DNA of 63,085 bases, the filler included, from Trichosphaerium sp. ATCC 40318 (taxonomy: Eukaryota > Protista > Tubulinea), in the NCBI GenBank assembly GCA_038496445.1. It is 3 parts of 3 records of this genome, joined end to end, with 100 filler letters (N's around TTAATTAATTAA, not from the genome) between each part and the next. Parts side by side here need not be neighbours in the genome. Positions count along the whole stretch, not along the records: positions 30,404 to 51,481 come from JALMLS010000295.1; 2 more parts are not named here. One strand, 5' to 3'. Under the pieces are notes generated by a model. The model had not been told where the DNA came from and did no database searches. It worked only from the letters and a program-made list of their open reading frames with translations. Below, piece by piece: positions 30,404-49,959 of this stretch (the first letter of the stretch is position 1; each line of letters begins with the position of its first letter). The translations under genes were made by a program, and so were the position numbers.

Positions 30404-31337
30404 CAATTTATCAACGTGGTCTTTCTGACTTTTATGAAGAAGAAAACGGACAGGGTGAAATAACACCCAAACGGCAAAGCGCGCTTGATTATCTAGGAAA
30501 TCCCCGAAAACGGAAGGCGGGCTGGCTGTAGATGCGTTGACACTTGAAGATGCTGGCGAAGATGAAAGTGGCTCATTCTCCACAACGCTTGCTCGACAAC
30601 TACAATGGCTTTCTGACCCACGTATGCAGCGCCATTTACAAAATGACGGTTTTTCTCTCGCCAAAGCCGTTCGGGAAAACTGGTCAATTTATGTTTGTAT
30701 TCCGCCCTCGCAAATTGCCCGCATGAAACGATGGATGCGCTGTCTTATACGCACGGGATTAGATGCAAAGATGCTTTCAAAAAAACAACATAAGGGGCAA
30801 CAAACGCTGTTCTTGCTTGATGAGTTTTTTGCGCTTGGAAAAATGAGTGAGATAGAAAACTCTGCCGCTTATATGGCTGGCTATGGTATCAAACTTGTAC
30901 CGGTTATTCAAAACATCGGGCAAATAAAAGAACTTTATAAAAAGAATTGGGAAACCTTCCTCGGCAATGCAGGCGCAATTATCGCTTGGGGTTTGAATGA
31001 CTTGGACACAGAAAACTATATTGCAGACCGTATCGGCAAAGCACTGACTTGGGAATTGTCGCAATCGGCTGGTTCAACCCGTACAGCAGGGCATTGGTTC
31101 AACGCATCCAGCAATAAATCGACCAGCACGTCATTGCAGGAAAGGCAAATACGTCGTTCAAATGAAATTCATATGGATGGGGCGCGAGAAACAGGGCGGG
31201 CATATATCATTCCTGCGGCATCCGCGCCATTTATGGTTATGCGACAAGAATATTTCGAGCGCTATCAAAGCGATAATATTTATGAGCCGATAGAGTTCAT
31301 TGAGCATTGGGAAGAACAATATGGCTCGCGCACCTAA
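30404..31337 (+). CDS. virD4: VirD4/TraG-like coupling protein, partial copy at contig start
   Basis: Same sequence as 43396-44333 apart from small contig-end deletions. Confidence 0.85.
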
Positions 31338-34077: not shown

Positions 34078-34166
34078 AACTGTTGCAAAAACTATCCTTT
34101 TTGCAACGGTTTTTTGTGGATAACAAAATCAATCACTTGGCTGTCGCAAAATCTTGTCGCAAAATC
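34078..34166. promoter_or_regulatory. Putative res site of the serine resolvase (copy at 47075-47163)
   Basis: Inverted repeat AACTGTTGCAAAAA-N6-TTTTTGCAACGGTT and direct repeat TGTCGCAAAATC x2 just upstream of the resolvase. Confidence 0.7.
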
Positions 34167-34171
34167 ATTGC

Positions 34172-34738
34172 ATGAAAATTGGATATGCCCGCGTCTCAAC
34201 CGTTGACCAAAACCCGAACGCGCAACGTGACGCGCTGAAGCTGGCAGGGTGTGAAAAAATAGTCACCGAAAAAGTGTCGGGCGCATCCCTAAAGCGCCCA
34301 AAATTGGAAAAGCTGTTGCGCTCACTCAATTCTGGTGATGTTCTAACGGTATGGCGATTAGATAGGGTCGGTCGCTCATTGCCACATCTTCTCAATGTCG
34401 TTGCAGACCTGAAGGCGCGAGAAGTTGGTTTTCAATCGCTCAATGAAACAATCGACACAACCACGGCCAATGGTGAGCTAATCTTCCACATATTTGCATC
34501 AGTAGCGCAATTTGAACGCTCTCTGTTAGTCGAACGCACTCAGGCGGGGCTTGTGTCAGCAAAAAAGCGTGGAGTGCGTCTAGGACGGCCTCCTGCGCTT
34601 AAAACAGCGCAAATAAAACACGCCAAGAAGCTGATTGAATCGGGTGAACGGCCATCTGCTGTTGCAGCTTCTCTAGGTGTAAATCGCGCAACCCTTTACC
34701 GTGCAGTCAAAAATACTAGAAAAATGGAAACTGCTTAG
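34172..34738 (+). CDS. Serine recombinase (resolvase/invertase family)
   Basis: MKIGYARVSTVDQ, VWRLDRVGRS, LGRPP and a C-terminal HTH. Confidence 0.95.
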   Translation: MKIGYARVSTVDQNPNAQRDALKLAGCEKIVTEKVSGASLKRPKLEKLLRSLNSGDVLTVWRLDRVGRSLPHLLNVVADLKAREVGFQSLNETIDTTTANGELIFHIFASVAQFERSLLVERTQAGLVSAKKRGVRLGRPPALKTAQIKHAKKLIESGERPSAVAASLGVNRATLYRAVKNTRKMETA

Positions 34739-34999
34739 ATGAATGATGATAAATACAACCGTTCTATCAACCTGCTATGCCCCACATGCGGCGGAGACCA
34801 ATTTGAATTTGATGGAGAAGAAGCCACAGAATACAAATGCGGCTCATGCGGTTTGGAAATACAAAAAAACGCGCTTATGGAAGCCAACAGCGAGAACATA
34901 GAAGAGCATACAAAAGAGATAGGTCGGGAAATCACGAATGACCTCATGAAAAACTTTAAAAAAACGCTTGGCGGCAACAAAGGCTTTAAGTTCAAATGA
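34739..34999 (+). CDS. Small zinc-ribbon protein (resembles the ECs_2282-like putative Zn-binding family)
   Basis: CPTCG...CGSCG; ATG immediately follows the resolvase stop. Confidence 0.8.
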   Translation: MNDDKYNRSINLLCPTCGGDQFEFDGEEATEYKCGSCGLEIQKNALMEANSENIEEHTKEIGREITNDLMKNFKKTLGGNKGFKFK

Positions 35000-35487
35000 C
35001 ACCAGAACCCACGTCTTTCTTAACTATTACCGCCTCTGATATAGTCGCGCTTCTAGCCTTTTTACTTTCGGCATTCGCTGTTTGGAAGACGGCTAAATTC
35101 AATAAACGACAGGAAGCAATGATTGATAGTCAGACGGAACTAAATCAACGTCTTCTCGAGCGAGAAAAAAACGAAGATACCTCATCAAAAATGTCTGATT
35201 TGGGCGCAAATCTTATTAAGCTAGGAAGCAGTAAATATCGAGTGAAAGTGTTCAATAAGGGAAAAGCAACAGCCACAAATGTCCGCCTCATTATCATGAG
35301 CGACGATAGCCCGCTTATTCAAAGTGACATAGACGCAAAATTCCCATTTGCCACACTCGAAACGCATCAGTCAGTCGAACTGCTGGCATCTGTCCATATG
35401 AGTTCGCCAGCTAAATCAGAAATCAAGATAATATGGGATGACGATTATCAATCTAATCGAGAAAAACTGGTCTTCCTGACCCTATAG
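34996..35487 (+). CDS. Hypothetical protein: N-terminal TM, coiled coil, beta-sandwich-like C-terminus
   Basis: ATGA overlap with the Zn-finger gene; IVALLAFLLSAFAVW; VKVFNKGKATATNVRL...IKIIWDD pattern. Confidence 0.8.
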   Translation: MTPEPTSFLTITASDIVALLAFLLSAFAVWKTAKFNKRQEAMIDSQTELNQRLLEREKNEDTSSKMSDLGANLIKLGSSKYRVKVFNKGKATATNVRLIIMSDDSPLIQSDIDAKFPFATLETHQSVELLASVHMSSPAKSEIKIIWDDDYQSNREKLVFLTL

Positions 35488-35557
35488 CAAAAGTTCCGTT
35501 TCAACCTCTATCCCGCATAGCCAGCTGTAACGGCAAAATAATTATCGGATTATTACA

Positions 35558-36112
35558 ATGTCGAAGGACGAAAAAATTGAAATAATACAATTGCTCAATG
35601 AGATTTTCTCAAACGTGAATGGATGGCTCCATTTTGCGGAGGCGAAAAATGGGCTCTTAACAACCATAAATATTGCTATCGTTACAGCATGCTTTAGTTT
35701 TCTTTCGAGTGAAAACTACACAAATTTGTACTTTGTTTTCTATGTATTTGTTCTTGGTTGTTTTTCTGCTTTTTCAGCAGTAGTTGGCATATTTTCATTT
35801 TTTCCTAGAGTTAAATTATTCAGGAACTCTGGAAATAACAGCAGCTCGCCCGTCGGAAACATCTATTTTTTTGGTGACATCGAAAAACTTGGTGTAGATA
35901 ATTTTATTAAATCTGTTTTCGACAAGACTAATACCTCACGACCGCCACATGCATATGAGGAAGACCTTGCACAACAAATTGTTGTAAATTCTAAAATTGC
36001 TTCAAAAAAATATGAGCTTTTCACTCTTTCGCTATGGCTCACACTTTCCGCTTTTATTACACCTGTATTAGCATTCCTCTGTTATCGGATATTTATTGAT
36101 GAAGCTCTCTGA
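35558..36112 (+). CDS. pycTM: Pycsar transmembrane effector (PycTM/DUF5706-like)
   Basis: WLHFAEAKNGLL, two TMs ending in FFPR, NIYFFGDI, QQIVVNSKIASKKY and a third TM; overlaps the cyclase gene. Confidence 0.88.
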   Translation: MSKDEKIEIIQLLNEIFSNVNGWLHFAEAKNGLLTTINIAIVTACFSFLSSENYTNLYFVFYVFVLGCFSAFSAVVGIFSFFPRVKLFRNSGNNSSSPVGNIYFFGDIEKLGVDNFIKSVFDKTNTSRPPHAYEEDLAQQIVVNSKIASKKYELFTLSLWLTLSAFITPVLAFLCYRIFIDEAL

Positions 36113-36962
36113 AATTTTAGCCGATAGGCAAAATACTGGTCTACTAGAAATGGCTGCTCGCGCAGTCGAAGGGCTTAGGTCAGATTCAGTTCAGAAAATT
36201 ATTGATGAAGAGGTCAGCTTTTTCAATCAAGGCGCTAAAATAACCACACAAAATAAGATACCGAGCACTACACAAATTCCAATTGAAAACCCAAACAATT
36301 GGATAAAAATTCCAGATGTCATTGCATGTTATGTCGACATGGAAGGGTCAACTCGGTTGAGTGCCACAACACATGAGAACAGTACTGCAAAGACGTACCG
36401 ACTATTTACAGCAACAGCAATTAAGATGTTTCATCACTTTGAAGCAGCTTATATCGACGTTAAAGGTGACGGGGTATTTGCTCTATTTGACGCAGATAAG
36501 ACCTACACAGCTTTAGCTGCAACCGTTTCGTTTAAGACATTTGTACATAATGAATTCACTCCAAAAGTTAAGAGTAAAATCGATATGTCTATTGGCGGTC
36601 ACTTCGGGATTGATAGACGCGCAGTTTTAGTTCGTAAACTTGGTTTAAAGTTTCATGGTGGACGCACAGATAGGCAAAATGAAGTTTGGGCAGGAAAACC
36701 TGTTAACATGGCGGCTAAACTGGCAAGTCAATCTACCGACGATACACTGCTAATATCTGACCGTTATTATAAAACTATAAACAACGAAAAGGCGCGCATG
36801 AGCTGCGGATGTCCTGATGGCGAACCCTCTGACCTCTGGTCTAAATTAGACGTGTCAAAGGATGATAAGTTTGATTTTGACACAGCCTATTCTTTAGGCA
36901 GCAATTGGTGCGCAACGCATGGTAAAAAGTTCTGTAGCGACCTCGTGAAACTAGATGAATAA
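36099..36962 (+). CDS. pycC: Class III nucleotide cyclase, Pycsar PycC-like
   Basis: Metal-binding YVDMEGST and KGDGVFALF; VWAGKPVNMAAKLAS (N-x3-K); paired with the TM effector. Confidence 0.85.
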   Translation: MKLSEILADRQNTGLLEMAARAVEGLRSDSVQKIIDEEVSFFNQGAKITTQNKIPSTTQIPIENPNNWIKIPDVIACYVDMEGSTRLSATTHENSTAKTYRLFTATAIKMFHHFEAAYIDVKGDGVFALFDADKTYTALAATVSFKTFVHNEFTPKVKSKIDMSIGGHFGIDRRAVLVRKLGLKFHGGRTDRQNEVWAGKPVNMAAKLASQSTDDTLLISDRYYKTINNEKARMSCGCPDGEPSDLWSKLDVSKDDKFDFDTAYSLGSNWCATHGKKFCSDLVKLDE

Positions 36963-36994: not shown

Positions 36995-37327
36995 CTAAAC
37001 CAATCTTGGCTGCGGTTCAATTTTCGCCACGGCTTCATAGCGTGAAACTTTGATGTCCCCTGCCCGCTTGCGTGCTTGCGCAATGTCGTAGCTGTTCTGC
37101 ATACGCATTAGTGTGTCCATGGGAACACCAAACGCCTTTTCGAGCCGTACAGCCATTTCTGGCGACAATGCAGCCTTCTCATTGAGCAAAGCCGATAACG
37201 CTGCTCTGGTCACGCCAAGCGCAGCCGCTCCTGCCGTCACAGAAAGGTCGGCGGGTTCAATAATTTCGGTTTTTACAAATCCACCAACATGCGGCGGATT
37301 TTGTAATCTGTAGTTTCCATCGGTCAT
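36995..37327 (-). CDS. higA: HigA-family antitoxin (HTH)
   Basis: PPHVGGFVKTEII, LGVTRAALSALLNEKAALSPEMAVRLEKAFG and MQNSYD; SD AGGAGG before ATG 37327. Confidence 0.93.
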   Translation of the reverse strand: MTDGNYRLQNPPHVGGFVKTEIIEPADLSVTAGAAALGVTRAALSALLNEKAALSPEMAVRLEKAFGVPMDTLMRMQNSYDIAQARKRAGDIKVSRYEAVAKIEPQPRLV

Positions 37328-37338
37328 AATATCCTCCT

Positions 37339-37629
37339 TCAATGGTAATCTTCATAGTCGAGGTCGATAATCTCAATCTCGGTTTCATGGATGAAAAACG
37401 TAATGCGCCAATTGCGCGACACAAACAGGCTCCAAGTACCCTTACGAGCGCCCTTTAACTGGTGAGCCTTCCAGCTCGAAAACACCCGTAGTTCTTCAGG
37501 GCTTTGCATGTCTTGCAAAAACGCCAGTATTTTGCGGATTTTGTCGATATATTCTGGCGGCAAGCCCGACACATCATCGGCCTCTAGTAAACGCCGTAAC
37601 CCTTTGTGTTTTACATTCGCTATTTTCAT
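37339..37629 (-). CDS. higB: HigB (RelE/ParE superfamily) toxin
   Basis: KHKGLRRL, HQLKGARKGTWSLFVSRNWRITF and DYEDYH; toxin-first gene order. Confidence 0.93.
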   Translation of the reverse strand: MKIANVKHKGLRRLLEADDVSGLPPEYIDKIRKILAFLQDMQSPEELRVFSSWKAHQLKGARKGTWSLFVSRNWRITFFIHETEIEIIDLDYEDYH

Positions 37630-37680: not shown

Positions 37681-38194
37681 TGTACACTTATTATTTACCC
37701 CCGTATCTGCCTTACACCCCTTCCCTGCCAAGTAATTTGTTGGGTGGGGTCGAAGGGAATTTTCCATCGCTTGGTAAGAACTAACCGATAGACCCTGAAT
37801 TCCTTTTTTTGAAAGCTGGTAGCTTAAATTTCTCTGCTTTTCGGAGCCGCTTTCGCTTGAGTGTTCTTCTGGTGCACAGGGGGAAATGTCAAAAGCAGTA
37901 GCGTAGCGACTTTTGATATTTTCACATAGGTGACAGATGATAAACGTCGAAAGAGGCGTGAGGCATAGAAATTTTCTATCTGCTTTTTGGTGAGCGAGAG
38001 CGAGACAACTACTATAACTGATTTGCCTGCGCTGCGTTAGCAGCGCCGAATAGGCAAATTCCACTTATGTCAGGCGAAGCCTGTCCTTTTAAGGCTTTTC
38101 GCTACGCTAGAAGCCCTTTCTTTTCTACTTATTACTTTTACTTCTTCTTAGTAGGGGGAATTTCTAAATTATTTCAATATGTTGCGCGTTTAGA

Positions 38195-38520
38195 TATAAC
38201 ATATTGGTGCTTAACCGCTTACATATTGGGTGGTTCACGATAACGATTCGGGTGATTCGGCACTACATATTGGGTGGTTCACGATAACATATTGGGGAGG
38301 TCAATTATAACATATTGGGTGAGATATAACATATTGGGTGATAGTTTTGGCATAGGTATAACAAATTGGGTGACTTGTTATGGCAAGACATAACATATTG
38401 GGTGGTTTGTTATGTCCCTGTGAGTGAATAGGTCGAATTTTCTTGTTCATCCTATAACTATAACATAAATTGTGATTCATGTTATGGGTTGATAATCAAC
38501 CTATCACCCAATTTGTTATG
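38195..38520. repeat. Iteron array / replication origin (consensus ATAACATATTGGGTG, ~9 direct copies plus one inverted copy just before rep); partial copy ~51188-51481
   Basis: Repeats visible directly upstream of the Rep_3 gene, with an AT-rich flank at ~38120-38190. Confidence 0.88.
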
Positions 38521-38527
38521 GCTAAAT

Positions 38528-39406
38528 ATGGATTATAAACCGCGCGAGAAAAGAGATTACGGCTCACTTGATGTTAAGCCCAACGCGGGTGAAATGATTA
38601 AGCCAGCCGAAACGATTGATATCGTCGGTGTCGAAAACCTCACCCTGCAAGATAAACGCGTTTGGAACGCCCTTATAGCAAACGCACACGGGCCAAACAT
38701 GCGTGAGGTAGGCAGAGACTTCAAAATAGACTTAACGCCTCTACGGGCAAACCATAACGGCAATGAGCGCATAGAAGATACAATCGAACGGCTCATGAAG
38801 ACGATTGCAGTCTGCCACATGCCAAATGGCTCTGTGACGCGGTTTCAGCTTCTGGGCGGCAATAACATGGGTGACCCGATGCGCCCGCGTGGTGAGCTAA
38901 CCTACAGCTTTGATAAGCGCCTCACTGAGGTTTTAAGCTCGTCAATCAGCTTTGGTAAGCTGGAGCTATCGGTTATGGCCGCTTTCAACAGCAAGTACGC
39001 CCTCGCCCTTTATGAACACGTTGCCCGCCGCATCAATATGAAATCATATGCTGTGCAAGAATACACCGTTGATGAAGTGCGCGATATCTTAGGTGTTGGC
39101 CCAAAGCAGCTAAAGGCATTTGGCAATCTCAAGCAAAGGGCACTCGTCCCTGCCCTAGAAGAAGTCAATTATTGGGCTGATTTTCGCGTTGCTCTGTCTT
39201 ACAAAAAAACAGGTCAGCGCGTGACGGGAATTTGTATGACTTGGCATTACAAAGACAGAGAAAGTCGCGCCAGAGCGAAGGCGGAGCTGGACAAGTCCCG
39301 CGACGGTCGCAAGGCGAGAATGAAAAACATCACGGAAACAATCGTCATTTTGCAGGACGACCCGTTGCTTGGCTTAAACAGCGAGAGCTTGTTTGAGAAC
39401 GATTAG
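38528..39406 (+). CDS. repA: Plasmid replication initiator, Rep_3 family
   Basis: LTLQDKRVWNALIANA, FNSKYALALYE, DEVRDILGV and FGNLKQRALVPALEEVN; follows the iterons. Confidence 0.9.
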   Translation: MDYKPREKRDYGSLDVKPNAGEMIKPAETIDIVGVENLTLQDKRVWNALIANAHGPNMREVGRDFKIDLTPLRANHNGNERIEDTIERLMKTIAVCHMPNGSVTRFQLLGGNNMGDPMRPRGELTYSFDKRLTEVLSSSISFGKLELSVMAAFNSKYALALYEHVARRINMKSYAVQEYTVDEVRDILGVGPKQLKAFGNLKQRALVPALEEVNYWADFRVALSYKKTGQRVTGICMTWHYKDRESRARAKAELDKSRDGRKARMKNITETIVILQDDPLLGLNSESLFEND

Positions 39407-40507: not shown

Positions 40508-41926
40508 CTAATGCTCACGTTTCCGCACACGCCCTTTGCGTTTGCGTCCTTTTCGCGCTTCACGGTTAAATTCAGCACGTTGCTGGCCGTTTGAAGGCTC
40601 CTGAGCCGCTTTCGTCTCTTTGCGGGTGGATTGCGTCGCTTCGGCCACCTTGAACGCTCTGGTGCGCTCCTGCTTGCGAGTACGCCACATGCGTTGCAGT
40701 GCGGTTTTCTCGCCGTCCTGCTTGTCCTTCAAAAGCTGCCTGCGATTATCAAAATTCTGCCGCATGCGGGCAAGGGCGCTTTGTTGGTCAATCTTCACTT
40801 GTCCAATGGCCGCGTTAATATCGGCCTTCTGCTCGATGTTGGCTTTGCGCCATTCAGCATTATGCGCTCTGTCCAACTCGGCGCGTCTGGCTTTTGAGCT
40901 GATTAGGAAATTAAACAGGCTGGTCGGCTTGCCTCCTTCTTCTCGGCCAAGTGCTTTTGAGGCAGAGGCGGCAGCAATGGCATTTTCGAGCTTGCCGAGC
41001 ATACGCTTCTCACGTTTCTCGAAGGCTTTGACTTCTCGATATTGCCGTTTGGCAATTTCCGAGCGCAAAGGCTTATGGTCGGCCTTTACATCAGCGATTG
41101 CCTTTTGAAACGGAGTAGGGGATGCGCCCCGATTGTAAACCGCTTTCTTTGCGTCCGCGTAGTCGCGTGAGTAGGCCTGCCACTCGTGCGAATGACGCGA
41201 ATGCATCTTCTGGCCATAAGCGGCTAAATCCGCGTCCTTGGCCTTCTGTGCCTCTTTCAGCTTCAGAATATCATTATCGTTTGAATGACCAAGCACTTCA
41301 GCCTGGTCTTTCAAATGATAGGGCTTGTCGCCCTTGGCCGAGAAGCTCTCACCAAGGTCGCGGCGCTTCCAATTCTCAACGCGGTTTTCGCAATAAATCT
41401 GGCCGCGTTCCTGCTCGTAAGACATAGCCCATTTGGAAAGCCGTTCCTGATACTTCCACAAGTCCAGCATTTTGCCATGGTCGGGATTAACGCGGTTTAT
41501 CACCACATGCACATGCGGGTGCTTGGTGTCATTGTGCGCAATGATAGCGGCCTGATAGCCTTCCGCGCCAAGCGCACGAAGGCTCTCATCTGCCGCCCGC
41601 AACATTTCAGATTTGCTCAGGCGGTCTTTCTCGTCGGGATGCCAGCCGAGCGAATAATGAAAAACCACCTTATCGGATTTGTTGCCGGCTGCGGATTGTC
41701 CAGCCTCGCGCTTAAGCGCGTCCTGCTGGTTGGCCGTTGCCCGCATGATGCGATAAGCCAAGTCGGGATTGTCGGTCGCAAGATTCCGAAACTCCGTCCA
41801 GTCTACGCGCTCGGCTGTGTCATTCGCAGCCTGACCTTCAAGGCGCTTGTCGTGCTGTAAGTAGGCAAACACGCCCTTGAAACTCGTGCCAGTGGCGCGG
41901 CCTTTGGTGGCAGCTTTAGGTGTCAT
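40508..41926 (-). CDS. Relaxase, MOB_P/VirD2-like, with long helical C-terminus
   Basis: SFKGVFAYLQ (catalytic Tyr), VFHYSLGWHPDE and AHNDTKHPHVHVVINRV (HUH). Confidence 0.93.
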   Translation of the reverse strand: MTPKAATKGRATGTSFKGVFAYLQHDKRLEGQAANDTAERVDWTEFRNLATDNPDLAYRIMRATANQQDALKREAGQSAAGNKSDKVVFHYSLGWHPDEKDRLSKSEMLRAADESLRALGAEGYQAAIIAHNDTKHPHVHVVINRVNPDHGKMLDLWKYQERLSKWAMSYEQERGQIYCENRVENWKRRDLGESFSAKGDKPYHLKDQAEVLGHSNDNDILKLKEAQKAKDADLAAYGQKMHSRHSHEWQAYSRDYADAKKAVYNRGASPTPFQKAIADVKADHKPLRSEIAKRQYREVKAFEKREKRMLGKLENAIAAASASKALGREEGGKPTSLFNFLISSKARRAELDRAHNAEWRKANIEQKADINAAIGQVKIDQQSALARMRQNFDNRRQLLKDKQDGEKTALQRMWRTRKQERTRAFKVAEATQSTRKETKAAQEPSNGQQRAEFNREARKGRKRKGRVRKREH

Positions 41927-42275
41927 AGGCCGCTCCCACTTTGGCAAGAACAGCGCGTAGCTCGGCCACCGCTTCATCCATGTCATGGGGAAGACCGTGG
42001 CCGCGATTAACACCCTTCGCAATCTGGTTCAGATTCACGCCAGTGCGGTTGAGTTCCAAAAGCATTTTGTCCTCAACAACGCTTGCGCGAGGAGCAACCT
42101 TGCGGCGGGTGGCAATCGAACGGATATATTCAGAAACGCTCAATCCTGCGGTCGCAGCTTGAGCTTCAATGAATGACATTTCTTCGGGATTAACGCGGAT
42201 AGAGGGTAGGGCAAGTGTCCTTGCTTGCCCTGCTGCCTTCATAGGCCGTCCGCGTTTTTTACCTGTGTCAGTCAT
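41916..42275 (-). CDS. mobC: MobC relaxosome accessory protein
   Basis: IRVNPEE...AGLSVSEYIR and ELNRTGVNLNQIAK; overlaps the relaxase start. Confidence 0.92.
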   Translation of the reverse strand: MTDTGKKRGRPMKAAGQARTLALPSIRVNPEEMSFIEAQAATAGLSVSEYIRSIATRRKVAPRASVVEDKMLLELNRTGVNLNQIAKGVNRGHGLPHDMDEAVAELRAVLAKVGAAYDT

Positions 42276-42800: not shown

Positions 42801-44333
42801 ATGAATGACGATGAAATGTTCGGTTTTGCCGATAAAGCCGCACTTAAACAATATAGCGAAACCTCATCATCATTCCTGCTTGGTAAAGCGCATCAAGACC
42901 ACGGTACAAGTCTTCAACTTGGCATCAATGACGATAGACATTTATTTATCATAGCAGGTTCTCGTAGTGGCAAAGGCACGTCCATGATTATTCCCAATCT
43001 GCTACATTGGCAGGGCGGTGTATTCTGCATCGACCCAAAGGGCGAGAATGCTGCAGTCACTGCGATAAGACGCGGGACAACCAAACAAGCGAAAGGGACG
43101 GGAACAAGCGTTCGAAAATTCCTAGACCACAAAGTCGCGATTCTCGACCCTATGGGGGCAGTTAAAGGCGCGGCAAAAACCTACAAAACAAACTATGACC
43201 CATTAAGCGATATTGATATCGGCAGCGATGATGAAGTCGGCCAAATCCTATCAATCGGTGAGGCCGTCGTCATGTCTGACAGTGAGGGAGAAACCCATTG
43301 GACAGACAGTGCCCGTATCGTCTTCTGCGGCATCATTGAAGCTGTCATCCATACCGAAAAAAACAAAGCCAACCACACTCTAACTTTCTGTCGTTCAATT
43401 TATCAACGTGGTCTTTCTGACTTTTATGAAGAAGAAAACGGACAGGGTGAAATAACACCCAAACGGCAAAGCGCGCTTGATTATCTAAGGAAATCCCCGA
43501 AAACGGAAGGCGGGCTGGCTGTAGATGCGTTGACACTTCTTGAAGATGCTGGCGAAGATGAAAGTGGCTCATTCTCCACAACGCTTGCTCGACAACTACA
43601 ATGGCTTTCTGACCCACGTATGCAGCGCCATTTACAAAATGACGGTTTTTCTCTCGCCAAAGCCGTTCGGGAAAACTGGTCAATTTATGTTTGTATTCCG
43701 CCCTCGCAAATTGCCCGCATGAAACGATGGATGCGCTGTCTTATACGCACGGGATTAGATGCAAAGATGCTTTCAAAAAAACAACATAAGGGGCAACAAA
43801 CGCTGTTCTTGCTTGATGAGTTTTTTGCGCTTGGAAAAATGAGTGAGATAGAAAACTCTGCCGCTTATATGGCTGGCTATGGTATCAAACTTGTACCGGT
43901 TATTCAAAACATCGGGCAAATAAAAGAACTTTATAAAAAGAATTGGGAAACCTTCCTCGGCAATGCAGGCGCAATTATCGCTTGGGGTTTGAATGACTTG
44001 GACACAGAAAACTATATTGCAGACCGTATCGGCAAAGCACTGACTTGGGAATTGTCGCAATCGGCTGGTTCAACCCGTACAGCAGGGCATTGGTTCAACG
44101 CATCCAGCAATAAATCGACCAGCACGTCATTGCAGGAAAGGCAAATACGTCGTTCAAATGAAATTCATATGGATGGGGCGCGAGAAACAGGGCGGGCATA
44201 TATCATTCCTGCGGCATCCGCGCCATTTATGGTTATGCGACAAGAATATTTCGAGCGCTATCAAAGCGATAATATTTATGAGCCGATAGAGTTCATTGAG
44301 CATTGGGAAGAACAATATGGCTCGCGCACCTAA
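42801..44333 (+). CDS. virD4: Type IV coupling protein, VirD4/TraG family, without N-terminal TM helices
   Basis: Walker A AGSRSGKGT, IDPKGE, Walker B FLLDEF and VIQNIGQIKELY. Confidence 0.92.
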   Translation: MNDDEMFGFADKAALKQYSETSSSFLLGKAHQDHGTSLQLGINDDRHLFIIAGSRSGKGTSMIIPNLLHWQGGVFCIDPKGENAAVTAIRRGTTKQAKGTGTSVRKFLDHKVAILDPMGAVKGAAKTYKTNYDPLSDIDIGSDDEVGQILSIGEAVVMSDSEGETHWTDSARIVFCGIIEAVIHTEKNKANHTLTFCRSIYQRGLSDFYEEENGQGEITPKRQSALDYLRKSPKTEGGLAVDALTLLEDAGEDESGSFSTTLARQLQWLSDPRMQRHLQNDGFSLAKAVRENWSIYVCIPPSQIARMKRWMRCLIRTGLDAKMLSKKQHKGQQTLFLLDEFFALGKMSEIENSAAYMAGYGIKLVPVIQNIGQIKELYKKNWETFLGNAGAIIAWGLNDLDTENYIADRIGKALTWELSQSAGSTRTAGHWFNASSNKSTSTSLQERQIRRSNEIHMDGARETGRAYIIPAASAPFMVMRQEYFERYQSDNIYEPIEFIEHWEEQYGSRT

Positions 44334-48554: not shown

Positions 48555-49109
48555 ATGTCGAAGGACGAAAAAATTGAAATAATACAATTGCTCAATGAGA
48601 TTTTCTCAAACGTGAATGGATGGCTCCATTTTGCGGAGGCGAAAAATGGGCTCTTAACAACCATAAATATTGCTATCGTTACAGCATGCTTTAGTTTTCT
48701 TTCGAGTGAAAACTACACAAATTTGTACTTTGTTTTCTATGTATTTGTTCTTGGTTGTTTTTCTGCTTTTTCAGCAGTAGTTGGCATATTTTCATTTTTT
48801 CCTAGAGTTAAATTATTCAGGAACTCTGGAAATAACAGCAGCTCGCCCGTCGGAAACATCTATTTTTTTGGTGACATCGAAAAACTTGGTGTAGATAATT
48901 TTATTAAATCTGTTTTCGACAAGACTAATACCTCACGACCGCCACATGCATATGAGGAAGACCTTGCACAACAAATTGTTGTAAATTCTAAAATTGCTTC
49001 AAAAAAATATGAGCTTTTCACTCTTTCGCTATGGCTCACACTTTCCGCTTTTATTACACCTGTATTAGCATTCCTCTGTTATCGGATATTTATTGATGAA
49101 GCTCTCTGA
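48555..49109 (+). CDS. pycTM: Pycsar TM effector (second copy)
   Basis: Identical repeat copy. Confidence 0.88.
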   Translation: MSKDEKIEIIQLLNEIFSNVNGWLHFAEAKNGLLTTINIAIVTACFSFLSSENYTNLYFVFYVFVLGCFSAFSAVVGIFSFFPRVKLFRNSGNNSSSPVGNIYFFGDIEKLGVDNFIKSVFDKTNTSRPPHAYEEDLAQQIVVNSKIASKKYELFTLSLWLTLSAFITPVLAFLCYRIFIDEAL

Positions 49110-49959
49110 AATTTTAGCCGATAGGCAAAATACTGGTCTACTAGAAATGGCTGCTCGCGCAGTCGAAGGGCTTAGGTCAGATTCAGTTCAGAAAATTATT
49201 GATGAAGAGGTCAGCTTTTTCAATCAAGGCGCTAAAATAACCACACAAAATAAGATACCGAGCACTACACAAATTCCAATTGAAAACCCAAACAATTGGA
49301 TAAAAATTCCAGATGTCATTGCATGTTATGTCGACATGGAAGGGTCAACTCGGTTGAGTGCCACAACACATGAGAACAGTACTGCAAAGACGTACCGACT
49401 ATTTACAGCAACAGCAATTAAGATGTTTCATCACTTTGAAGCAGCTTATATCGACGTTAAAGGTGACGGGGTATTTGCTCTATTTGACGCAGATAAGACC
49501 TACACAGCTTTAGCTGCAACCGTTTCGTTTAAGACATTTGTACATAATGAATTCACTCCAAAAGTTAAGAGTAAAATCGATATGTCTATTGGCGGTCACT
49601 TCGGGATTGATAGACGCGCAGTTTTAGTTCGTAAACTTGGTTTAAAGTTTCATGGTGGACGCACAGATAGGCAAAATGAAGTTTGGGCAGGAAAACCTGT
49701 TAACATGGCGGCTAAACTGGCAAGTCAATCTACCGACGATACACTGCTAATATCTGACCGTTATTATAAAACTATAAACAACGAAAAGGCGCGCATGAGC
49801 TGCGGATGTCCTGATGGCGAACCCTCTGACCTCTGGTCTAAATTAGACGTGTCAAAGGATGATAAGTTTGATTTTGACACAGCCTATTCTTTAGGCAGCA
49901 ATTGGTGCGCAACGCATGGTAAAAAGTTCTGTAGCGACCTCGTGAAACTAGATGAATAA
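49096..49959 (+). CDS. pycC: PycC-like cyclase (second copy)
   Basis: Identical repeat copy. Confidence 0.85.
   Translation: MKLSEILADRQNTGLLEMAARAVEGLRSDSVQKIIDEEVSFFNQGAKITTQNKIPSTTQIPIENPNNWIKIPDVIACYVDMEGSTRLSATTHENSTAKTYRLFTATAIKMFHHFEAAYIDVKGDGVFALFDADKTYTALAATVSFKTFVHNEFTPKVKSKIDMSIGGHFGIDRRAVLVRKLGLKFHGGRTDRQNEVWAGKPVNMAAKLASQSTDDTLLISDRYYKTINNEKARMSCGCPDGEPSDLWSKLDVSKDDKFDFDTAYSLGSNWCATHGKKFCSDLVKLDE

Follow-up and report, generated by a model that had tools for sequence, protein, structure and literature searches.

Among the described relatives of the system considered here, the closest is that of Anabaena sp., whose clade D Pycsar cyclase, AnPycC, is represented by PDB entry 8JSZ (PMC11224242). 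AnPycC turns UTP into cUMP, as established by LC-MS/MS, and together with its partner AnPycTM it protects E. coli against phage T2 (PMC11224242). Its catalytic aspartates are D62 and D106, while the nucleotide pocket is lined by F60, K104 and F109, which are conserved in clade D and needed for activity (PMC11224242). The zinc ligands C221, C223, C260 and H263 are needed for activity as well, and their conservation sets clade D apart from clades A, B, C and E (PMC11224242). Among the PycC clades, cCMP is made by clade E only (PMC11224242).

A further study described Pucsar systems, which are Pycsar relatives that use GTP, make cGMP and form a separate subclade sister to Pycsar-1 (bioRxiv 10.64898/2026.08.12.744502). 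The Pucsar cyclase is a plain domain-swapped dimer, and G118 and K195 of PfPucC make up a guanine-compatible pocket (bioRxiv 10.64898/2026.08.12.744502). The same study delineated a Pycsar-2 subclade that has TM effectors only and whose cyclases carry N-terminal helices and a C-terminal module; AlphaFold3 ligand scoring favours UTP for this subclade (bioRxiv 10.64898/2026.08.12.744502).

Here, we analysed a locus at positions 35558-36962 of a 63,085-nucleotide stretch of DNA from the Trichosphaerium sp. ATCC 40318 assembly GCA_038496445.1 (the window), of which positions 30404-51481 come from record JALMLS010000295.1. Judged by profile searches, a structural model and analogy with AnPycC, the locus is very likely a clade D Pycsar system against phages, complete and carried as cargo by a mobilisable Rep3 plasmid of ~13.0 kb, that presumably signals through cUMP.

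A small mobilisable plasmid as carrier

Direct-repeat analysis revealed that positions 30404-51481 are a circle of ~12,996 bp (~13.0 kb) traversed ~1.6 times and not a linear stretch of genome. Long direct repeats recur in this part at a spacing of 12,993-12,997 bp, and the two passes of the circle are 99.84% identical over the 8.1 kb that they share. The passes differ only by a handful of small indels and substitutions, and the Pycsar operon region is free of them. The identical operon found further along the record (Table 1) is the same plasmid read twice and not a gene duplication, since the ~13-kb circle was read 1.6 times.

The reading made from the sequence alone (the sequence-only reading) had placed the system on a plasmid, and the circle indeed holds a Rep3 initiator gene, iterons, a relaxase, a coupling protein, a resolvase and a HigBA pair (Table 1). 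The Rep3 initiator gene lies downstream of the iterons, and the best relatives of its product in PLSDB are initiators of small Rhodobacterales plasmids, with 48% identity. For the relaxase, identity to its counterparts on small Sphingobium plasmids is 39.5%, and we infer that the plasmid backbone is of an alphaproteobacterial type. The coupling protein gene crosses the junction of the ~13.0-kb repeated unit. The resolvase gene lies 5' of the Pycsar operon and shares its strand, and the HigBA pair adjoins the operon in convergent orientation.

A megablast search of PLSDB returned no match, neither with the operon nor with the whole 12,996-bp unit as query. These comparisons support a host element that is a small mobilisable Rep3 plasmid, uncatalogued in PLSDB. 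In a search of sequencing runs, three metagenomes contained ~5-6% of the sampled words, a share too small to judge expression by.

Table 1. Features of the Pycsar operon and of its plasmid, in positions of the window
Feature	Position	Strand	Basis or remark
Serine recombinase (resolvase) gene	34154-34738	+	Pfam PF00239 2.6e-43, HTH_7
PycTM effector gene, 184 aa	35558-36112	+	ORF call, Pfam PF18967
PycC cyclase gene, clade D type by comparison, 287 aa	36099-36962	+	ATG start
Effector/cyclase overlap, 14 nt	36099-36112	+	effector stop TGA 36110-36112
First metal motif, Y79-V-D81-M-E-G-S-T	36330-36353	+	alignment to 8JSZ
Second motif, Y-I-D121-V-K123-G-D125-G-V-F128-A-L-F	36450-36488	+	alignment to 8JSZ
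N204-M-A-A-K208, transition-state Asn and basic residue (N-x3-K)	36705-36719	+	aligned with AnPycC NMAAKL and BcPycC NYAAKL
C-terminal zinc ribbon, C237-x-C239 ... C272-x-x-H275	36804-36920	+	alignment to AnPycC
HigB-HigA toxin-antitoxin pair	36995-37629	-	Pfam PF05015 1.3e-11, PF01381 4.1e-10
HigA	36995-37342	-	
HigB	37339-37629	-	
Replication module (iterons and Rep3 gene)	38221-39406	+	
Iterons, 22 bp x 3.5 copies	38221-38296	+	tandem-repeat search
Iterons, 32 bp x 2.9 copies	38322-38414	+	tandem-repeat search
Rep3-family initiator gene	38489-39406	+	Pfam Rep3_N, Rep3_C
MobA/VirD2-type relaxase gene	40508-42022	-	Pfam PF03432 6.4e-25
Type IV coupling protein gene, TraG/VirD4 type	42801-44333	+	Pfam PF02534 2.8e-59, PF12696, PF10412
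Second Pycsar operon copy	48555-49959	+	100% identity to 35558-36962

Effector, start codon and operon layout

The first gene of the operon encodes a protein that matches the Pfam PycTM family PF18967 with an E-value of 7e-12 and 46.1 bits, against a gathering cut-off of 27.2. The PADLOC models for the 2TM effector (PDLC00691, 2e-40) and for PycTM (PDLC02364, 3.8e-30) were matched as well. Hydropathy predicts that the effector crosses the membrane with three helices (approximately residues 31-51, 56-83 and 154-181). The effector is 28-34% identical to the PycTM neighbours of the two closest cyclase relatives, and a search of NCBIfam gave no model for either the effector or the cyclase. Together with the PycC match of the second gene (see below), these scores bear out the assignment of the locus to Pycsar that had been made from the sequence.

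The longest cyclase reading frame runs from a TTG at 36096 to 36962 and encodes 288 aa; residue numbers in this text refer to this form. Among the 120 closest database proteins, 93 start at a Met aligned with the ATG at 36099, and we therefore took this ATG as the start. A start at Met19 (36150), which would abolish the overlap with the effector gene, was rejected, as most relatives reach the Met aligned with the ATG at 36099. The two genes overlap by 17 nt if counted from the TTG and by 14 nt from the ATG, and with either start (36096 or 36099) the effector-first order with overlapping genes that had been noted earlier stands. The 14-nt overlap suggests translational coupling of the cyclase to the effector.

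Is this layout a peculiarity of the present operon? We inspected the locus in six cyclase relatives and found a PycTM gene adjacent to the cyclase in all six. In four of them the effector comes first and overlaps the cyclase gene by 4-41 nt, namely by 14 nt in L004 and L008 (Aestuariivirga), by 4 nt in L007 (Archangium) and by 41 nt in L001. The gene order is reversed in the other two, both of them cyanobacterial (L006, Microcoleus, and L009, Phormidesmis). An effector-first, overlapping layout is thus not unusual for the clade D-type PycC family.

It is very unlikely that the operon is a decayed or silent plasmid remnant, or that it serves plasmid maintenance (addiction) instead of phage defence. 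Such a reading would fit the HigBA addiction module next to the operon and the lack of RNA evidence in the search of sequencing runs. It would also fit the outcome of the consensus scans for promoters, Shine-Dalgarno sequences and terminators around the operon, which gave nothing convincing and no clear promoter or ribosome-binding site; these scans are weak evidence, however, and the host's type of promoter may not follow the consensus. On the other hand, the reading frames of effector and cyclase are both intact, and all family-invariant catalytic, zinc-binding and pocket positions are retained.

Based on the AnPycsar and Pycsar literature (PMC11224242), we propose that upon phage infection the cyclase dimer would turn UTP into 3',5'-cUMP, which would in turn switch on the three-helix PycTM and lead to damage of the inner membrane. 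The infection would then be aborted before phage progeny are released. Coupled translation of the two genes would probably be part of this arrangement.

Placement and probable product of the cyclase

The cyclase matched the PADLOC PycC model PDLC00763 with an E-value of 1.1e-111, the alignment covering positions 9-265 of the model's 268; the generic cyclase family PF00211 of Pfam gave an E-value of 0.045, below threshold. Its best match among solved structures was 8JSZ, AnPycC, entered as "uridylate cyclase" (E 2.3e-83, residues 33-287), with 132 identities in 255 aligned positions, or ~52% (about 48-52%). The second-best match was 7R65, a clade B cUMP synthase, at 8.4e-07. A profile built from a 57-member alignment of the cyclase's own family was run against the solved PycC structures, a set that contains no clade C structure, and ranked 8JSZ (clade D, 6.4e-117) ahead of 7R65 (clade B, 1.3e-12), 6YII (clade A, 0.059) and 8JSF (clade E, cCMP, 0.089).

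The structural model points in the same direction. The AlphaFold2 prediction (mean pLDDT 89.9, pTM 0.84) contains one cyclase core, and the cyclase is a single-domain protein of class III type, extended by helices at its N-terminus and by a zinc ribbon at its C-terminus. Clade A cyclases have two cyclase domains and clade D cyclases one. The top Foldseek match of the model was 8jsz_A (TM 0.82/0.91, rmsd 2.0 A), followed by 7r65_A (TM 0.71/0.88) and then by ordinary adenylate and guanylate cyclases.

In a database of 5.8 billion sequences, the closest protein is 68% identical to the cyclase, which is itself absent there. A tblastn search of PLSDB with the cyclase found distant PycC-like genes only, mostly from Actinobacteria and at most 34% identical, and no clade D relative on a catalogued plasmid. 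A scan of a genome collection with the cyclase yielded 115 pattern matches, 0 of which were confirmed.

The catalytic residues named in the sequence-only reading, two metal aspartates and an N-x3-K element, are indeed in place as D81, D125 and N204/K208. D81 corresponds to AnPycC D62 and is Asp in 120/120 relatives; D125, which lies within YIDVKGDGVFALF, corresponds to AnPycC D106; and the positions of N204 and K208 are invariant in the same 120 proteins. For this mapping we allowed for the offset of one between the chain numbering of PDB 8JSZ and the numbering of PMC11224242. The zinc ribbon residues C237, C239, C272 and H275 align with AnPycC C221, C223, C260 and H263 and are kept in 119-120 of the 120 relatives. 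Two of the three pocket positions are also shared with AnPycC, K123 being the counterpart of K104 (86 K and 34 R among the relatives) and F128 that of F109 (F in 113/120). At the third, AnPycC F60, a conservative change puts Y79 here; among the relatives this position is 115 times F, 4 times Y and once V.

Canonical cyclases select the purine with a residue that lies three places ahead of the G-D of the second motif, Lys in adenylate cyclases and Glu in guanylate cyclases. In the present cyclase this place is taken by D121, three residues before the Gly, and a profile alignment sets D121 opposite Lys in both adenylate cyclase 8 (IKILGD) and CyaB (DKFVGD). The register proposed earlier for this Asp is therefore sound. 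The signature had been called atypical on these grounds, and it does depart from that of canonical adenylate and guanylate cyclases, but it is the standard one for clade D PycC. D121 is invariant in 120/120 of the closest relatives and is also found in AnPycC (D102), and the whole Y-I-D-x-[KR]-G-D stretch, flanking Y, I, G and D included, does not vary among the 120. By these alignments, an Asp in place of the canonical Lys or Glu would be a fixed feature of this pyrimidine-cyclase clade and no pointer to a new product.

As far as comparisons of sequence and modelled structure reach, the cyclase falls within the characterised clade D PycC and has the same residues. The proposal that the motif marks a divergent clade, one whose product is not known and might be new, did not hold up, given that motif and zinc ligands are shared with a clade D cUMP maker; the match in product itself is by homology. 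By analogy with AnPycC, we infer that the cyclase produces cUMP.

Could a clade D-like Pycsar of this kind nevertheless belong to a sub-branch that makes, in place of cUMP, cCMP or a purine cNMP, with a PycTM that has co-evolved to sense it? The cause would be the exchange of Phe for Tyr in the pocket or further differences yet to be charted. We regard this as very unlikely. The rarity of Tyr at the F60 position (4/120 relatives) speaks for such a change, Pycsar-related cyclases can switch to cGMP (bioRxiv 10.64898/2026.08.12.744502), and ligand specificity could drift given that the effector is just 28-34% identical to the PycTM of the closest relatives. However, K123, F128, D121 and the entire beta-strand motif are the same as in AnPycC. 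A Tyr at the pocket position would also be compatible with UTP, because BcPycC, a cUMP synthase, carries Y50 there. In addition, cCMP is a product of clade E only (PMC11224242), a clade that the family profile barely detects (0.089), and Pycsar-2 cyclases are predicted to favour UTP (bioRxiv 10.64898/2026.08.12.744502).

Even less probable, and in our view extremely unlikely, is a Pucsar (purine cyclase) system that makes cGMP and is no Pycsar at all. The partner of a Pucsar cyclase is likewise a three-helix TM effector from this family. But Pucsar is sister to Pycsar-1 and its cyclase a plain domain-swapped dimer, whereas the present cyclase has N-terminal helices and a C-terminal Cys/His module, in agreement with the description of Pycsar-2 and with the clade D zinc ribbon, and AnPycC, a demonstrated uridylate cyclase, matches it strongly over its full length. 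A clade D Pycsar with cUMP as messenger remains the preferred reading.

Beyond annotation, the significance of the locus is slight. It shows that an Asp in the purine-selecting place is a trait of the whole clade and no local oddity. What appears to be new is a moderately divergent, plasmid-borne member of an already characterised Pycsar clade, on a plasmid unlike any in PLSDB. Since a small Rep3 plasmid that is mobilisable can carry it, clade D Pycsar can presumably move between hosts. The invariant Asp (D102 in AnPycC) may bear on the question of uracil selection and lies outside the residues addressed in the AnPycC structure paper (PMC11224242). We speculate, at low odds, that a sub-branch at most 68% identical to database proteins and with a rare pocket Tyr could make a nucleotide other than cUMP, or else that this Asp is the true uracil-selecting residue of clade D.

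Comparison with known systems

With the class III cyclases, such as CyaB (3R5G), Cya2 (2W01) and mammalian adenylate cyclase, the present cyclase shares the catalytic fold, the two-Asp, two-metal mechanism and the head-to-tail dimer with active sites at its interface. It differs from them in having Asp121 where adenylate cyclases have Lys and guanylate cyclases Glu, in the Lys that takes the place of the Arg after the transition-state Asn, and in its linkage to a defence effector.

Like those of Pucsar, the cyclase has as its partner a three-helix TM effector that belongs to the pJV1-spdB3/PycTM family, and it would act in anti-phage signalling. By the published descriptions it is set apart from Pucsar, and that of Pycsar-2 fits it better.

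The clade B cUMP synthase BcPycC (7R65), from Burkholderia cepacia LK29, resembles the cyclase in its fold, in both metal aspartates, in the N-x-A-A-K element and in the Tyr (Y50) at the position of Y79. Unlike the present cyclase, with which it has 19% identity, it is without a zinc ribbon and has Ala at the position of D121. The residues reported to select the base in BcPycC, D94 and R97, correspond here to K123 and G126.

The closest likeness is to the AnPycC/AnPycTM pair (WP_066377497.1, WP_066377494.1). AnPycC comes from a cyanobacterium, whereas the present system sits on a small mobilisable plasmid with a backbone that seems alphaproteobacterial. The pocket residue F60, Tyr79 here, is the only one of the reported pocket, catalytic and zinc residues of AnPycC that differs, and K64 is replaced by a Glu that most relatives have too. 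Both systems combine a cyclase of ~280 aa that has a single cyclase domain and an N-terminal helical extension with a PycTM partner. Both cyclases carry the motifs YVDM.GST, YID[IV]KGDGVFALF and NMAAKL and a zinc ribbon of the form C-x-C ... C-x-x-H, and AnPycC, which reads Y-I-D-I-K-G-D-G-V-F-A-L-F in the second of these motifs, has the same Asp as D121 of the plasmid-borne cyclase.

Plasmid circle and putative origin

The piece spanning 30404-51481 corresponds to a circle of ~12,996 bp that is read ~1.6 times, a concatemer of the type that long-read assemblies yield from small plasmids. Comparison of the two passes shows a few small indels and substitutions, at 30494, 30542, 31828, 37879, 37968, 37995/37997 and 38049-38052; the one at 30494 is a 1-nt indel in the coupling-protein gene, which is intact (510 aa) in the second pass only. 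These differences look like assembly noise rather than biology. Several of them cluster at 37879-38052, just upstream of two iteron arrays (see table), which share a common core such as ATATNGGGTGG; the iteron region is likely the oriV.

Features of the plasmid and of a related locus
Feature	Position	Placement	Description
Two small genes	34739-35487	Between the resolvase gene and the Pycsar operon, same strand as both	
Two iteron arrays	38221-38414	Immediately 5' of the Rep3 gene	Repeat units of 22 bp (3.5 copies) and 32 bp (2.9 copies)
Neighbours of P0002	L004:1-6408		D5_N primase, ParB-methyltransferase fusion, small terminase subunit, DUF6602, TIR-domain protein

The Pycsar operon and its upstream gene pair

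With a G+C content of 36-41% (positions 35404-36903), compared to ~45-49% in the neighbouring plasmid genes and 51-56% in the relaxase region, the Pycsar operon contrasts with its plasmid in a manner that fits recently acquired cargo. A good Shine-Dalgarno sequence was absent at both Pycsar genes. An identical 9-mer, TTATCGGAT, was found at 35542-35550 and 36082-36090, i.e. 7-8 nt upstream of the ATG start codons at 35558 and 36099; it could act as a weak GGA-type ribosome-binding site, or its recurrence could be a coincidence.

The two small genes preceding the operon overlap by an ATGA at 34996-34999 and are translationally coupled. The first encodes an 86-aa CxxC zinc-ribbon protein of the ECs_2282 family (NCBIfam NF047912, 2.5e-16); PADLOC gives it a weak match to the candidate PDC-M14A (8.5e-7). 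The second encodes a 163-aa protein with a single membrane helix at its N-terminal end, for which a family match was not found and an ESM Atlas features search returned hypothetical or 'CARDB-like' clusters only. These genes may constitute a second, uncharacterised pair, either defence or cargo; their adjacency to Pycsar is not kept in relatives.

Gene neighbourhoods of cyclase relatives

The closest relative of the cyclase, P0002 (68% identity), is surrounded by mobile-element and defence genes (see table), which suggests a defence island borne by a phage or satellite. At the locus of Microcoleus sp. AT3-D2 (L006:2501-4844), PycTM lies between the clade D cyclase, which comes first, and a second, cyclase-like gene (267 aa, weak PF00211 match), giving a cyclase-effector-cyclase arrangement. 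This layout resembles the multi-cyclase loci in the Pucsar preprint on cGMP-making Pycsar-related systems (bioRxiv 10.64898/2026.08.12.744502).
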